From NCBI GenBank assembly GCA_000708835.1, contig DF236962.1, positions 124,001 through 188,000 of the forward strand: DNA of 64,000 nucleotides. Reading direction: 5' to 3'. Both the position numbers and the translations under genes were made by a program. Every line of letters starts with the position of its first letter. Position 1 is the stretch's first letter. Below are positions 54,903 through 61,899 of the stretch, piece after piece. The DNA comes from Klebsormidium nitens. Lineage: Eukaryota; Plantae; Klebsormidiophyceae. The notes below the pieces were generated by a model. It was given only the letters and a program-made list of their open reading frames with translations, made no database searches and had not been told where the DNA came from.

Positions 54903-55720
54903 CCTGTCAGATGAAAGTAGAAGCACGTCGAAAGCGTTGCTCTTGTGCCTCTGCTACCAATTAATACTGATTTCTGCTCCTGGTGGAGTTTTGCAACTCA
55001 AGCTTTGACTTCTAAAAGCAGTGATACTTACTTACAAGCTCAGAAGGAGCAGGCTCGCAAAAGATGAGAATCTGACTCTGAAAAGGTGAATTCCATGTGA
55101 TTCCGACGTGCCGCCAGGCAATGATCCTCTGGCATGCCAGTCTCAGAGTCAGCCCCCATATGCATTGATGGTAACTTCCATGCGCAATCGATCAACGGAC
55201 CATGTCTCAAAGAATTTGTGTGTGGCATTGCATTGCGGGGATATAGCAGCTCGCGAGACCATTAGTGTTCGCACTGATTGGTCCCATGCAAACAGTCATG
55301 CATGCAAAAGGTACGGATGCGCGAGCTTCGAAACATTAACCCGACGAGATTTTTGATCTACGTTTAAGTGGCTCTATTTTGATGCATGTACTTGGGCATA
55401 TGACATCGATCATGATCCTGTAGTAAATGATTATGTACCTTAAAAGAAGATGATTACAATTTGAATTGTGGTCGCACCGAGCTATCATGCATGCATTCTG
55501 CCCATGACCATTACAATTTGCCAAAGGGTTATTTGCAATTGAATGGTCCTAGCTAGTCTTAAAAAGGGAAGAATGAACGGTATGATCCACACAATCTGAC
55601 TTCGCAGAAAATCTCTATTGCAATTTGAACCTTGTTAGCTTGTCCGGAGTTCAATTCCCTAGAGCCTTGCATCCGTCAGTGGCTCCAGGTTTAACAAACA
55701 TTCCAGATCGTCATATCTAC

Positions 55721-58700
55721 CTACGAGGTAAGACACAGGCCAGCGCTAAAGCACCGAAAGTACATCAGGTCCTCGTAAGAAATGCTCCCGCACTCCTTCG
55801 TTGTAGAGACCTGCAGAGCCTTTTCCTGAAACAAGGCAAACTTCTCGCAAGTCTGTTTCCAATCAACCAGCTCTTGGTCTACCTCATTCTTTGCCTCGAG
55901 CAACGCCTTCTCCTTGTCCGCATCCCACAGCACTTTTCGAATGCCGTTCAGACTCGCTTGCTTGGATTCTGCCACTCCGACCTTTTCCCGAATAGCCTGA
56001 AGAAGGGCCTCCAGAATGTCCTGAGGGGATCCCGTGTCCTGAGGGGAGCCCGTATTTTGAGAGGGCCCCACGTCCTGTTGGGCGCCCATGGCCTGAGGTG
56101 GTCCCGTGTCCCGAGGGGGGCCCGTCGAGGGGGCGCGGCATATCGCCCTGATCAGAGGGGCCACCTTGGAAAAAGCGGCGACCAGCACGACCCACGTCAC
56201 CAGGTGTATCCTCCATCTGGTGTACAAGGTGCCGCTCACGTGATCTCGCTGCAGTAGAACTCGATATGCGAGGCGGTAATTGTTGATCATCGACTTGATC
56301 TGGCGCGGGTTATCCGGCAGGAAGGCAACGTAGTATGTGCCCAACAGCTCGGCTGCGACTCCGTCCCGCCCCTCCACTCCTACGGTCATTTCCTCCCCGT
56401 CCTCGACCCGCTGATCACCGTCCTTGACCCGCTGATAACCGCCCAGTCTTCGTTGCAGATATAGAAGTTTCCGCCACGCTCCAAACTCCGCCATTCTTGG
56501 TTTATGAGGAGATGCAATATCATCTTCGGGTGCTGCGGCTGCCCGATATTGAGTTACCAAGTCGTCCCTTGCTGTAGCAGCTCGAGCGTCTCCTTCTCAA
56601 CGTAGCGACCGAGCGGCTGGAAGTGAGCTCGCGACCCCGTCGTCCTCTAATCCTCGAGATCCAGAAGCTCCCGTCACTGCCTGGTTCTCGTGATCTGATA
56701 CTCCCACCAACTTCTGGACATAAGACTCGCGCTCCGCCTCTGTTAATGGGGGCAGCTCAATGGACAGTTGGATGATCTTCTGAAGGAAACGCCTCGACTC
56801 ATCCCGGCTGACTTCAGACAATCTGGAGGCCCCAGTAACGCCCTTGAAGTGGTTATATATAGCGCGGGTCGTCATCTCGAGGTCGAGCCCGAAAATCGTA
56901 TATATACCCAGGTCCTTGTTATCGCAGCCGCCCAGGACGATGTTGACGGCCTCCAAAACGGACACAACCGCATCGTCCTGCGAACGATCCAGGTCGTCGA
57001 TGAAGACTATCACCTTGGTCCTTTCAGAGCCCACGCAACGCCCCAGGAATTGGAGATCCTGGATAACCCTGTTCTGGTAGCCCACATACCCCAGGTGCTC
57101 AGTGGTCGGCGAGACGACGTACCCCGCAATCTGCTGGCTGACCGGCTTGAAGATGGCGTACATCCTCCAAACGAAGAACGCCAGCCAGCCCACCACACCG
57201 AAAGCGACCAAGCTTCCGTACAGCGCGTCACTGGTCCTTGCTTTGGCGCTCTTTAGGGACGTGGGGACACCCAGTGCGACTACGAGAGCGGCAGCCAGCG
57301 AGCTCAAGAGGAGCGAGACAATATTGACAATCAACTCGCTCTTCCGTTTCTCGAAAGCATAAGCGGCATAAGCCCAGAGCCGCCAGCCCCAGCTAAGCCG
57401 TCCTTCGATTGCCCGCCCCACCTCGACTGCAAGCCCGGCCCAGATCTCCTTGGAATCCCGGTGGAGCCAGGCCTTGAACCACACCACAATCATTCTCGAC
57501 TTGACCTTCCTCTCCAGTAACTTCATTGCGGTCGACTTGCCCTTGCCCCAGACCCCATGGAACGCCATAGTGACTGGCGCCTTCGTGCCCTTGTCTAAGA
57601 GAAAGCCCGCCACAGCTTCGCACGTACCCGTGGTGTTGATGAGGTCTGCGTTGCTCGGATTGTCGCTAAGGGTGTCGCTAGGTGGGGCAAGGGAGCGACA
57701 CCCTTTCAAATTGAGTACCTTGAGCATATTGTTCTTTCCCTGGGGTAATTGAAGCTCCCGGATGCTCGTGCAGTCGCCCAGGTCAAGCTTCCGGAGGTTG
57801 GTCAGGGCTGCCAGGCCACGGAGCGCCGTCAGCTTGCGGCACTCCCTTAAGTCCAGGGTTTGGAGCTCCAGGCACTCGCTCAGGTCCGGAACCGACGTCA
57901 GCGCCCAACACTTCCTCAGGGACAGCGTCCGGAGCGCCGCGCACCCGCTCAGGTCTAAGACTGCCGTCAGCTCAACGCACTCGCTCAAGTCCAGCGTTTG
58001 GAGCATTGAGCACCCTCTTAGGTCCAAGGCCGCCGTCAGCGCCATACACCCACTCAGGTTCAGAAACTGGAGCGCCGAGCACTTGCTCAGGCCCGGGATT
58101 GCCGTTACCGCCAAACACCCCCACAAGGACAGCGTCTGGAGCGCCGTAAACCCACTCAGGTCCGGAATTTGCGTCAGCTTGCGGCACTCCCTTAAGTTCA
58201 GCGTCTGGAGCGCCAAGCACTCACTCAGAACCGGGGCCGCCGTCATCCCCGAACAACCCCACAAGGACAGCGTCTGGAGCGCCGCAAATCCGCTCAGGTC
58301 CGGAATCTCCGTCAGTTTGAGGCACTCCCTCAAGTTCAGCTTCTGGAGCGCCGAGCACCCTCTCAGATCTGGGGCCACCGTCAGATTGTCGCACAGGCTC
58401 AAGTTCAGCGTCTGGAGTGCCGAGCACCTGCTCAGATTCGGGGCCGCCGTCAGCTCAACGCAACCGCTCAAATCCAGCATCTGGAGCACCGAGCACCCGC
58501 TCAGGTCCAAGGCTGCCGTCAGTGCCAAACATTCCCTCAAGTTCAGGGTCTGGAGCGCCGAGCACCTGCTCAGTCCCGGGATTGCTGTCAGTGCCCGACA
58601 CTCACTCAAGTTCAGCGTCCGCAAAATTGAGCACCCGCTCAGGTCCGGGGCTGCCGTCAGCGCCGAACACCCCCACAAGGACAGCGTTTGGAGAGTCGCG

Positions 58701-59869
58701 CACCCGCTCAGGTCGGTGACCTCCGTCAGCTTGCTGCACTCGCTCAAGTCCAGCGTCCGGAGCGCCAAGCACCCTCCCAGATCCGGGGCCGCCGTCAAGT
58801 TGTCGCACAGGCTCAAGTCCAGGGTCTGGAGCCCCGAAAACCTGCTCAGGTCTGGGGCCGCCATTAGCGCCTGGCACCGGCTCAATTCCAGCGTCTGGAG
58901 CGCCGAGCACCCGCTCAGGCCTGAGGTTTCTGTGAGCGCCTTGCACCACCCCAAGTCCAGCGTCTGGAGGGTCGAGCACCCGCGCAGATCCGGAACCGCC
59001 GTCAGCTTGCGGCACTGCCTCATATCTAGCGTCTGGAGCGCCGAGCACCCACTCAGGTCCGGGGGTTGCGTTAGAGCCTCGCACCAGCTCAAATCCAGCG
59101 TTCGAAGCGCCAAGCACCCGCTCAGGTCCGGGGGTTCCGTCAGCGCCTCGCACCAGCTCAAGTTCAGCGTCTGAAGCGCCGAGCACCCGCTCAGGCTCCC
59201 AAGTCTTGTCAATCTCTTGCACTTTTTAAGGTCTATGAGGCGGTAAGCAATGCCAGTGGAGGTCAAATCCAGTTCCGTGAGGTCAGCATCGTGTATCTGC
59301 AGACATGGACACATGCATGTGATTTACCTTTCATATGTCAACTGTTGCTCCCAACATGTCTTACAGGGCCTGAAATATTCGGCAACCATCCTTTAAATGC
59401 CAAAGCACACTGGCTGTCCCTCAAACCCCAGGCATTCTTTCTTAGGCGTCGTAGCCAATTTAAATGCCGCCACAGACTACTGTTTGCTTTGAGAAGAACA
59501 GATATCAGACACGCTAAGACCTGCATTATACTTGCAAACAGAAGCCAAACAACCCTGTGCACAGCACAGAGGGCAAACACGTGTAAAGACAAGGAAGTTC
59601 TGAGCAGGCTGAAAGGCTGACAAGTGCAATCTTTTGAGTGGACACGCTTACGGCACAACTTACTGAAGACATTTCAGGATTAGATTAAAAGAAAACGTCG
59701 AAGGCATGGATGTTACGGAGCTGATCAAAATGGATACACGAGTTGCATACATTGACTGCATTTCACACTGCTTACGAATCCATGCAGTTTGGCAGTTGAT
59801 TCTACAACTTCAAGAGCCGCACTGCCAATGCAGGATGAGAAGACGCACCTCAAGATGGTCCTCCGCCAT
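55721..59869 (-). CDS. LRR-KAP protein: ~22 N-terminal 23-aa leucine-rich repeats, KAP-family P-loop NTPase with two transmembrane helices, C-terminal coiled coil; one in-frame TGA at 56597-56599 (possible pseudogene allele)
   Basis: Putative micro-exon 59869-59849 (MAEDHLE|GTGCGT) plus exon 59296-55721. Repeat consensus LQTLDLSxCxxLTxxPDLSGCSA; Walker A MAFHGVWGKGKST; VVWFKAWLH; TM segments LIVNIVSLLLSSLAAALVVALGV and ALYGSLVAFGVVGWLAFFVW; Walker B KVIVFIDDLDRS; FLQKIIQLSIELPP; LPDNPRQIKSMIN. ORFs 56597-59314 and 55721-56560 are in the same frame, separated only by the TGA. Confidence 0.85.
57690..59230 (-). repeat. 69-bp coding tandem repeat array (LRR units)
   Basis: About 20 strictly 23-aa units plus degenerate flanking units. 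Confidence 0.95.
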
Positions 59870-61899
59870 TGTTGCCCACAACCAGAGGATAGAGTAAGCA
59901 GCGTGGCACGTCCTCAGCTAGCAATAGAGGCCCAATATTGGCCCTTCACGGGTCAGCTAAGCTGGCCCTGGCAAAATATGAGAACAAAAACCCGGAAACA
60001 TGCCGTTGCAAAGCAGGCGGGTAAATATCAAGGACCCCGTGAGAAGCTGCGGAACACAAGCCGGCCCTGCCCTCGCGGATCCAGCTCGCCTGCGTCTCCT
60101 GTCAATGAGAGACCGTCAAAGACGTTTTTGAAAGAGAGTAGAGCCTAGAGATTGAAGTAGGAAGGACAATGTCCTAGTACAAGGTAGGTAGTAGGCAGAG
60201 AGGACATTGTCATGTTGACATTCATCATGATGAGCCGACACACTTTAAAGAGGGCGTCTTGGGACCCGTCACGTCTCGGCGTCGGGCGACCGGATACCGC
60301 GAAAATGGGCAAAGTGGTCGCTGAGGCAGATTTCGATGATGCATTGTAGTCCGTCCGATGAGGTTTTCCCTCTGGACTCAGATGCCACTAGTGCGCTTTG
60401 AAATCTGACGCCCTTTACATCGGTAGGTCAATCGATTTTTCCTTCGGCCCGTCGCTTATAAGTGGTCGGGAAGTCAGCAAAAGCGGGGACTTTGAGGGGC
60501 AAGAGTGCTCGGTGTGATGCAATAACTGTATGAAGTTAGGTATTAGATGACTAGGTTACCGGTACTTGTTGTCCGGCCTGTACCATCATGATTGCATGAC
60601 CGGACTCCGGTACTGAATTCCAAATGGAGGTATTAGGTAATATGCAGTTAGGCTGCAAGGAAGCGTCACACGCCGCCACTGGCCCACATCTTGGGATGGC
60701 GCAGCCTGCCGAAAGCCCGCCAGCAAACTTGCCTCTTCAATTTTTCCAACTGAGGAGAAGACGGTCGGGGGCCGGCCAGACATGACGGAGCCGTTGTGCC
60801 AAACTTAATCCTGTCTCAATTAAGGTACCCATCACCTGTGTGCATCAGTGCATCAATGGGGGAATGATTGAGGGGAAGAAAGATAAGCTCGAGTACGTCA
60901 GCGGCTACACGAAGATCGACCTTGAACAAATGGGTGGCCTGCAGGCCCCAAAATAAATACTCGAGGCTGGGGCTAACACGTCGCAACGTCGAAAGGACGG
61001 GGGAATTAGAAAAGTATGTCTGCAAGCAGCTAGGAACTAGCTTGCTGACATCAGCCAAAAGCTGGGAGCCATCTTGACCATACATGCATCGTCTGCATCA
61101 CGATCAGGTTCGTGTACTGATATTGCCATTAGTGTGAGTCGATGTGCGTGATGTTGCACTCCCGTTGCAGTACCGATTCACCGATTAGTCGGATAGAATT
61201 CGAAATGGAGCCGTTATATATACAGAGCATCCGAAAAACTTCTTCAAGACAAGCATATTTAACCGGCGAGCTGTAAGAGAAGCAAACGGCCAGTCCTTTT
61301 GTGAACTAATTAAGGTTTTCCTCTCCTGCCAGAATGATTGGTACCGGTACGCTTCAAGGCTACGGTTGAAGCTCTATACAAAGCGCCGAGAATCAGAGGG
61401 GGCGATTGTGAGACAGGCAACCTTGAAATCTTAACACCCAAGAAGGCCCGGCAGGCGAAGCCCGGCCATACTACAAAACAATACTAAGGAATCGAAAAGG
61501 TCTGAATGAATATTGTGCTGAAAGACAGGGAACGCTCGGGACTTTGTCACGAACTGTAGCAATCATCTATATAAATGCTGAGCTGCTCACTTCTCAATGC
61601 AGAGCACTCGCAAAGAGCATGTAAGATGCTATATATTCGTGAAGCAAGTAATGGAAACCTGCCAAACGGCTTATCATGAGGATGCATTTCGAATCGTTCA
61701 ATCTTCGTCGGGGCACGTCGAAGGTAGGCTCGAGTCCACTGATTACGAAGCTGGCACTGACTGGCTGGCTTCTTTGATATGAATCTGCCAGCTTCTAGGA
61801 GGCGACTGGCATTCAAGACTGGGTTTCACAAGCATCCGGCCGGCAATCTGATTGGCTCGCACATTTAAAATGGGTACACGTGTACAAGATCTTTGCCCG

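Follow-up and report, generated by a model that had tools for sequence, protein, structure and literature searches.

An expressed leucine-rich repeat–KAP NTPase gene of Klebsormidium nitens with an in-frame stop codon belongs to a streptophyte KAP clade

Gene structure and domain architecture

We analysed a gene that encodes leucine-rich repeats (LRRs) followed by a KAP-family P-loop NTPase in a 64,000-nucleotide stretch of the streptophyte alga Klebsormidium nitens (GenBank assembly GCA_000708835.1, contig DF236962.1, positions 124,001 to 188,000 of the forward strand). This whole stretch is called the window, and all coordinates below are positions within it. The locus is one expressed gene of two exons on the minus strand (55721–60354), with an in-frame TGA inside the KAP domain. 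Logan contigs from four public runs of four studies were aligned to 55400–60900. Each run gave a single contig of 4.0–4.3 kb, spanning about 55470–59296 and then 59849 to about 60117–60354, and all four were colinear with the genome, with no differences and no gaps. In every run the one contig joined 59296 directly to 59849, skipping 552 bases bounded by CT..AC on the plus strand, which is GT..AG on the minus strand. This spliced joint means that the runs are RNA-derived and that we are dealing with a spliced eukaryotic nuclear gene, in agreement with the preliminary description, which had placed the locus in a putative streptophyte alga; expression was seen in runs of at least four studies. 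At a coarser level, 18 of the 24 listed runs (6 studies) contain at least half of the sampled words of the stretch.

Exon 1 (60354..59849, minus strand; contigs start at 60117–60354) comprises a 5′ untranslated region (UTR) of about 485 nt and the first seven codons (MAEDHLE), and translation of the spliced mRNA begins at the ATG at 59869–59867. After the sole intron (59848–59297, minus strand; 552 nt, GT..AG, present in the contigs of all four runs), exon 2 (59296 to about 55470, minus strand; contigs end at 55470–55546) carries the remaining coding sequence and the 3′ UTR. Read from the frame, the final stop is a TAG at 55721–55723, and with the ATG of the spliced mRNA it reproduces exactly the limits first given for the gene, 55721–59869. 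The 5′ UTR (59870–60354, minus strand) holds at least one short upstream open reading frame (ORF; MMNVNMTMSS..., about 27 codons), which may limit translation of the main ORF. No further copies of the gene were found within the window.

Following a degenerate LRR cap (59177–59296, minus strand), the protein contains 22 LRRs of 23 residues each (residues 48–554; 57656..59176, minus strand). These are of the intracellular type found in ROCO proteins and in TNLs, the TIR-bearing class of nucleotide-binding LRR receptors (NLRs). All 22 units keep an exact 23-residue register, with the consensus LQTL[DN]LSxCxxLTxxPDLSGCSA and a mean pairwise identity of 57%, and the underlying DNA is a tandem repeat with a period of 69 nt and 19.7 copies. 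Pfam matched LRR_4 at 4e-46 along with several other LRR families, including RPS4B-like and R13L1/DRL21 types. Register and Pfam matches together bear out the earlier count of about 22 repeats of 23 residues N-terminal to the NTPase. The nearest LRRs are those of plant TNLs (SNC1, L6, TAO1, RPV1), algal NB-ARC-LRR proteins and bacterial Roc-COR-TIR-LRR proteins. No signal peptide was found at the protein start, so the LRRs are expected to face the cytosol. A repetitive 470-residue ORF runs antisense to the array (57762–59174, plus strand) and seems to be a side effect of the 69-nt repeat, not a gene.

The core of the KAP NTPase, upstream of the TGA (residues 556–880; 56678..57652, minus strand), contains an N-terminal DNPxxxDL motif, Walker A, a hairpin, Walker B and the sensor region. 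The ORF before the stop matched Pfam KAP_NTPase (PF07693) over profile positions 7–240 of 293 with a score of 70.2 bits (cut-off 20; E 2.2e-19). Walker A (GVWGKGKS, residues 588–595; 57533..57556, minus strand) and Walker B (IVFIDDLDR, residues 770–778; 56984..57010, minus strand) flank a hairpin of two hydrophobic helices (residues about 662–688 and about 699–723; 57149..57334, minus strand), with hydropathy peaks of 2.55 and 1.99. This hairpin is retained in all five algal proteins considered below and in most of their land-plant and bacterial relatives. The conserved NPRxxK..N motif is present as well (NPRQIK, 56294–56311, minus strand; NPRQIKSMINN starts at residue 1003), but it lies 3′ of the TGA that is kept in the mRNA. 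Further downstream on the same strand are a third hydrophobic helix (56135–56209), a Pro/Gly-rich hexapeptide repeat (56027–56134; an 18-nt tandem repeat of six copies at 56017–56125, GPPRDT/GSPQDT-like) and a helical coiled coil (55808–56026), after which comes a conserved tail. The hexapeptide array is absent from P0001, the closest homologue, which implies a recent in-frame expansion.

Every KAP hallmark listed in the preliminary description was thus found where it had been placed: Walker A, two helices between Walker A and B, the IDDLDR of Walker B, NPRQIK and the coiled coil. The Pfam check that it had proposed gave PF07693 plus LRR, as it had anticipated, and not the NB-ARC or NACHT match that would have spoken against it. 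Pfam reported no NB-ARC, NACHT, Roc or COR domain on the window protein (NB-ARC and NACHT at E <= 0.01), and we rejected an NB-ARC or NACHT identity for the NTPase, as Pfam matches KAP only. PADLOC assigned QatA (4e-20) and PifA (3e-9), in both cases over parts of the profiles only, and the NCBIfam QatA model gave 75.7 bits against its equivalog cut-off of 600 bits, which leaves the protein well outside full-length QatA or PifA.

For the fold, the KAP part of the intact homologue was modelled with AlphaFold2 (mean predicted local distance difference test score 80.7, predicted template modelling score 0.77). The model consists of a P-loop core, a long hairpin of two 30-residue helices and a helical C-terminal part. 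Its best match among solved structures was RdrA (Z 17.9, 361 residues aligned), followed by archaeal ORC/Cdc6 (Z 16), BrxC (12.6) and CED-4 (12.1). At the sequence level no PDB chain matched the KAP profile, and Foldseek by itself returned weak matches only. RdrA, ORC/Cdc6 and STAND proteins are ring-forming. By its predicted fold, the KAP domain would be an oligomerising switch ATPase of the ORC/STAND-like kind.

An in-frame TGA retained in the transcript

The only in-frame stop ahead of the final TAG is the TGA at codon 907 (56597–56599, minus strand), which falls within the KAP domain, in the variable linker joining the NTPase core to the NPR-bearing half. It is present in the RNA contigs of all four studies, unspliced and with the base unchanged. 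The same frame then stays open for 291 codons (55724..56596, minus strand), which encode the C-terminal KAP half, the hexapeptide repeat, the coiled coil and the tail. With the TGA kept in the transcript, the sequenced strain probably makes no full-length protein; the preliminary description had not mentioned this stop. A 21-nt tandem duplication (56397–56441; 2.1 copies, 91% match; YQRVKDG/DQRVEDG) lies in the variable linker on the far side of the stop.

P0001 has no stop over the corresponding region, and the post-stop frame aligns with the C-terminal parts of P0001 and of the three other close relatives, P0002–P0004. We compared the gene with the DNA of P0001 (synonymous divergence, dS, about 0.7–1.0) and obtained ratios of nonsynonymous to synonymous divergence (dN/dS) of 0.20 in the core, which precedes the stop, and, past the stop, of 0.18 in the NPR region and 0.21 in the C-terminal region. 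The equality of these values implies the same constraint on both sides of the TGA through nearly all of the divergence, and the stop would then be young relative to the split of the two genes. The most likely reading of the window copy is a young allele, null or truncated, from which transcription continues.

The same 291 open, in-frame codons, constrained like the core (dN/dS 0.18–0.21), could instead reflect a fully functional gene in which programmed readthrough or minor splicing yields a short LRR–NTPase-core product together with a full-length one. Steady expression in runs of several studies would suit this explanation, and excision between one GT..AG pair (276 nt) would take out the variable linker alone. 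However, a very recent nonsense mutation predicts the same dN/dS pattern, all four contigs are unspliced at the TGA, and the intact homologue has no stop to read through. The base following the TGA (+4) is, from the sequence, a G, and UGA-G is an unfavourable context for readthrough in eukaryotic termination. A recoding RNA or a selenocysteine insertion sequence (SECIS) element was sought in Rfam over 55300–60500 and gave no match at E <= 1, and we therefore rejected selenocysteine or a known recoding RNA. We likewise rejected structure-driven readthrough, as a 126-nt segment that includes the stop and the sequence following it is no more stably folded than shuffled versions (z 0.04). As for an intron across the TGA, the only GT..AG pair directly surrounding it is 30 nt apart, below normal intron size; longer in-frame candidates have weak sites or would remove conserved core, and none of the four transcript contigs uses any of them. 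We consider a fully functional gene unlikely and keep to a young null or truncated allele.

Relatives and origin of the KAP module

A word-based search with the KAP part against 5.8 billion clusters returned only four close proteins: P0001 (LRR-KAP), P0002 (ankyrin repeats plus KAP, ANK-KAP), P0003 and P0004. The remaining matches were metagenomic bacterial KAPs at about 30% identity. P0001, the closest relative, is a 958-residue protein encoded on a Logan contig, and its KAP core shares 76% identity with that of the window protein; P0002 is encoded on a Joint Genome Institute (JGI) metagenome contig whose genes are fragmented and eukaryote-like. When 1.84 billion representatives were searched exhaustively with a profile, 16,923 KAP proteins emerged, of which only P0001–P0004 scored above 760 bits, the next match reaching 339 bits. 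Among 183 proteins examined from the searches, LRRs were present in one, P0001. LRR-KAP is therefore very rare in public data, and the rarity that had been suspected for this fusion stands, with one further example. We also scanned JGI metagenome contigs and genomes in GTDB by pattern for more algal-type members and obtained bacterial-type relatives only, at no more than 34% identity.

Comparison of the window with the contig of P0001 (L001) showed no synteny outside the coding region. The P0001 ORF starts with an IHD motif, the same as that which follows the intron of the window gene, which suggests that the intron position may be conserved between the two. P0001 and a stand-alone short KAP, P0004, occur in the same sample (contigs L001, L029 and L030; Logan SRR14092358 and SRR14092360), so one organism has at least two KAP paralogues.

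The long profile matches came from land plants and have the ANK-KAP layout; they belong to Ginkgo, Cryptomeria (dozens of loci), Taxus, the lycophyte Diphasiastrum and the fern Adiantum. Their genes (among P0106–P0223) encode 1,000–2,300 residues, are all annotated as uncharacterised and are multi-copy in gymnosperms; in a few, the annotated model also includes a retrotransposon or ALOG domain. Among the matches listed in the profile search there was no angiosperm, bryophyte or animal KAP, and animal Kidins220 was not among the best 150 of the 16,923. We then inferred a maximum-likelihood tree (40 rows, 542 columns, LG+C20; restricted to algal, land-plant and bacterial-type KAPs), which was the KAP-domain phylogeny that the preliminary description had called for. 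The five algal proteins, that of the window and four others of algal type, formed a clade (support 99/97), the land-plant proteins another (100/100), and the two were joined at 96/97. The combined clade sits beside or within a group of proteins from bacterial metagenome-assembled genomes (Chthoniobacterales, Marinimicrobia, Calditrichaeota), and larger quick trees agree.

These results bear on whether the locus could be bacterial contamination or a recent bacterial transfer. Its nearest relatives outside plants are bacterial and its coding sequence has only one intron, both of which such an origin would explain. On the other side, the transcripts show a spliced GT-AG intron and long UTRs, GC content at third codon positions (GC3) is host-like (0.73 in the gene vs 0.70 in a neighbouring ORF), and the gene is contiguous with multi-exon neighbours inside the window. 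It is also nested with land-plant genes, while identity to bacterial proteins is only about 30%. With the intron, the GC3 and the tree all opposed to it, we rejected a contaminant or recent horizontal transfer as highly improbable. The scarcity of introns, which had been read as a possible sign of bacterial origin, loses that meaning in a KAP clade that includes lycophytes, ferns and gymnosperms, since nesting in this clade makes a low intron count no evidence for a recent bacterial source. Of the bacterial origin suggested for the KAP module, recent import thus falls away, and an ancient transfer is compatible with the bacterial sister group. On the tree, the KAP module is old in streptophytes, and a bacterial origin is plausible as an ancient event at most.

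Several relatives have immune-type domains nearby or within the same protein. On the contig of P0002 (L002:8084-12652; JGI metagenome 3300060285), the KAP gene is preceded on its own strand, at less than 2 kb, by a TIR ORF (TIR_2, E 1e-21) and two ORFs with ankyrin repeats. This arrangement suggests a candidate TIR-ANK-KAP multi-exon gene of eukaryotic origin (GC3 0.54). On the contig of P0003 (L003:6594-7571; Logan SRR23617307), an ORF of 325 residues lies 430 nt upstream of the KAP gene on the same strand. Its N-terminus is helical, and it matches NB-ARC below threshold (E 1e-4), with a degenerate P-loop; it could be part of the KAP gene or a neighbouring NLR fragment. In bacteria, the metagenomic KAPs P0183, P0149 and P0181, of about 1,000 residues, have N-terminal TIR_2 or EVE domains, and effector–KAP fusions thus exist outside eukaryotes.

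Putative function and comparison with known systems

The KAP family of P-loop NTPases (PF07693) is said to have been described by Aravind et al. in 2004, with Kidins220/ARMS as its prototype, and a KAP domain joined to a repeat array is already known from Kidins220. Like the window protein, Kidins220/ARMS has an N-terminal repeat array and, after it, a KAP NTPase with transmembrane helices, predicted ones in the window protein, inserted in its P-loop domain. The family and the window protein have in common the motifs GxWGxGKS (Walker A), DDLDR and NPRxxK, the last lying 3′ of the TGA in the window gene. The window protein differs in having LRRs where Kidins220 has ankyrin repeats, and two clear membrane helices (a third is possible) instead of four. 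The SAM/KIM tail of Kidins220 was not detected in it (no SAM match), and it does not qualify as an orthologue. The land-plant ANK-KAPs (Cryptomeria japonica XP_057841088, Taxus chinensis KAH9294881, Ginkgo Gb_26217, Diphasiastrum, Adiantum) are closer, as they belong to the same KAP clade, have the hairpin and share the conserved blocks NAWxY..WAGLAVEI and PVSxxxxxY with the algal proteins. They differ in their ankyrin repeats, their length of 1,000–2,300 residues and their dozens of paralogues per gymnosperm genome.

With plant TNL NLRs and with bacterial and brown-algal ROCO proteins, the window protein shares the LRR subtype, and with ROCO also the position of the LRRs N-terminal to the NTPase. 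Its NTPase is KAP, however, and neither the NB-ARC of NLRs nor the Roc-COR of ROCO. Its order of LRRs and NTPase is the inverse of that in NLRs, and the C-terminal LRRs of NLR/STAND proteins are lacking. RdrA, of the RADAR anti-phage system, is a ring-forming immune ATPase and the top structural match to the modelled KAP domain, but it has no detectable sequence relationship and no membrane hairpin, and an RdrB-like partner was not seen at the window gene. Among bacterial defence proteins, PifA (F plasmid), QatA (QatABCD) and EF_KAP have a KAP NTPase; phage defence by EF_KAP needs Walker B, and PifA has a membrane-linked output, namely membrane depolarisation as summarised in a preprint (PMC13001434). 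In a 2025–26 preprint (10.1101/2025.10.07.681051), bacterial KAP NTPases with unknown regions fused at the C-terminus are shown to act against phages and to need Walker B for it. These bacterial proteins are without LRRs, and they match the window protein partially and at about 30% identity at best.

Taking the evidence together, we favour, with moderate confidence, the reading that this is an expressed nuclear LRR-KAP gene of a streptophyte-wide KAP clade, whose intact protein would be a membrane-tethered NLR-like switch and whose copy in the window was recently inactivated or truncated. In such a protein, a cytosolic TNL-type sensor of 22 LRRs would be tethered to the membrane through the KAP hairpin, beyond which would come a helical lid bearing the NPR motif and then a coiled coil. 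Binding of a ligand by the LRRs would release the NTPase, which would then assemble into a ring in an NTP-dependent manner, as in RdrA, ORC/Cdc6 and STAND proteins. Ring assembly would cluster the hairpins and the coiled-coil tails, and the output could be either to perturb the membrane (compare PifA) or to recruit partners, for example TIR-type effectors. We infer an immune-sensor role by analogy, because of the TNL-type LRRs, the TIR-bearing relatives, the bacterial KAP defence proteins and the RdrA-like fold.

Several points weigh against this reading. Kidins220, the best-studied repeat-bearing KAP, is a signalling scaffold and no immune receptor. The concave-face positions of the LRRs (LQTLxLS) are nearly invariant across repeats, which is atypical of a hypervariable ligand surface. 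The TIR (L002) and NB-ARC-like (L003) ORFs may be separate from the KAP genes. Concerning the stop, the RNA runs are probably all from one strain and the TGA could be a mutation of a culture line; low-level readthrough or a rare splice form is also possible, as contigs drop minor variants.

In an alternative explanation, the family would be a membrane signalling scaffold like animal Kidins220/ARMS, outside immunity, with repeats that recruit endogenous partners. The layout is the same, N-terminal repeats followed by a KAP domain with a membrane insert, and ANK-KAP is the dominant layout in land plants; the nearly invariant concave face also speaks for a scaffold. The LRRs nevertheless look like those of a fast-evolving sensor, as suggested by their dN/dS of 0.66 against the DNA of P0001 and by the difference in repeat number, 22 in the window gene vs about 15 in P0001. 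Multi-copy families in gymnosperms, the TIR ORF adjoining a relative and the use of KAPs in bacterial defence are further points against a scaffold, as is the absence of Kidins220 from the best 150 profile matches. On balance we think a scaffold improbable and continue with an NLR-like switch.

Literature searches turned up no paper dealing with KAP NTPases of either Klebsormidium or land plants. The nearest precedent is the NLR-like gene UNPLg00127 of Chromochloris zofingiensis, an NB-LRR gene for which a C-terminal KAP with two transmembrane helices is mentioned in passing (Andolfo et al, 2019; PMC7145615). Compared by description alone, it differs from the window gene in encoding a nucleotide-binding (NB) domain, in carrying KAP as an extra C-terminal module and in belonging to a chlorophyte. 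The preliminary description had noted no earlier account of such a fusion in green lineages; this stands for LRR-KAP without NB-ARC, and it does not stand for a C-terminal KAP on a green-algal NB-LRR gene, given that mention. Both LRR-KAP without NB-ARC and the streptophyte KAP clade, with its expanded ANK-KAP families in non-flowering plants, appear to be undescribed.

A broader and more tentative proposal, which we regard as possible but on the doubtful side, is that streptophytes have, as a second class of immune receptors, NLR-like proteins that are based on KAP and tethered to a membrane. Such a class would have had a single origin from a bacterial KAP before land plants, followed by swaps of sensors and effectors, which would have given Klebsormidium its LRR-KAP, a related alga TIR-ANK-KAP, and lycophytes, ferns and gymnosperms their expanded ANK-KAP families. 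It would then have been lost in angiosperms, and such a loss would explain why work on plant immunity has not come across the class.

In the current view, NB-ARC NLRs are the basis of intracellular immunity in plants. In the window gene, a streptophyte alga pairs TNL-type LRRs with a different switch ATPase, a membrane-inserted KAP of the kind that bacteria use against phages, and the large KAP gene families of non-flowering land plants are unstudied. The stop in the window copy is in keeping with birth-and-death turnover, which immune receptor genes typically undergo; it lowers the functional weight of this copy and not that of the KAP family. If these proteins are receptors, they would form a parallel, membrane-based branch of plant immunity that is missing from model angiosperms, and they would add one more immune module to those passed from bacteria to eukaryotes.

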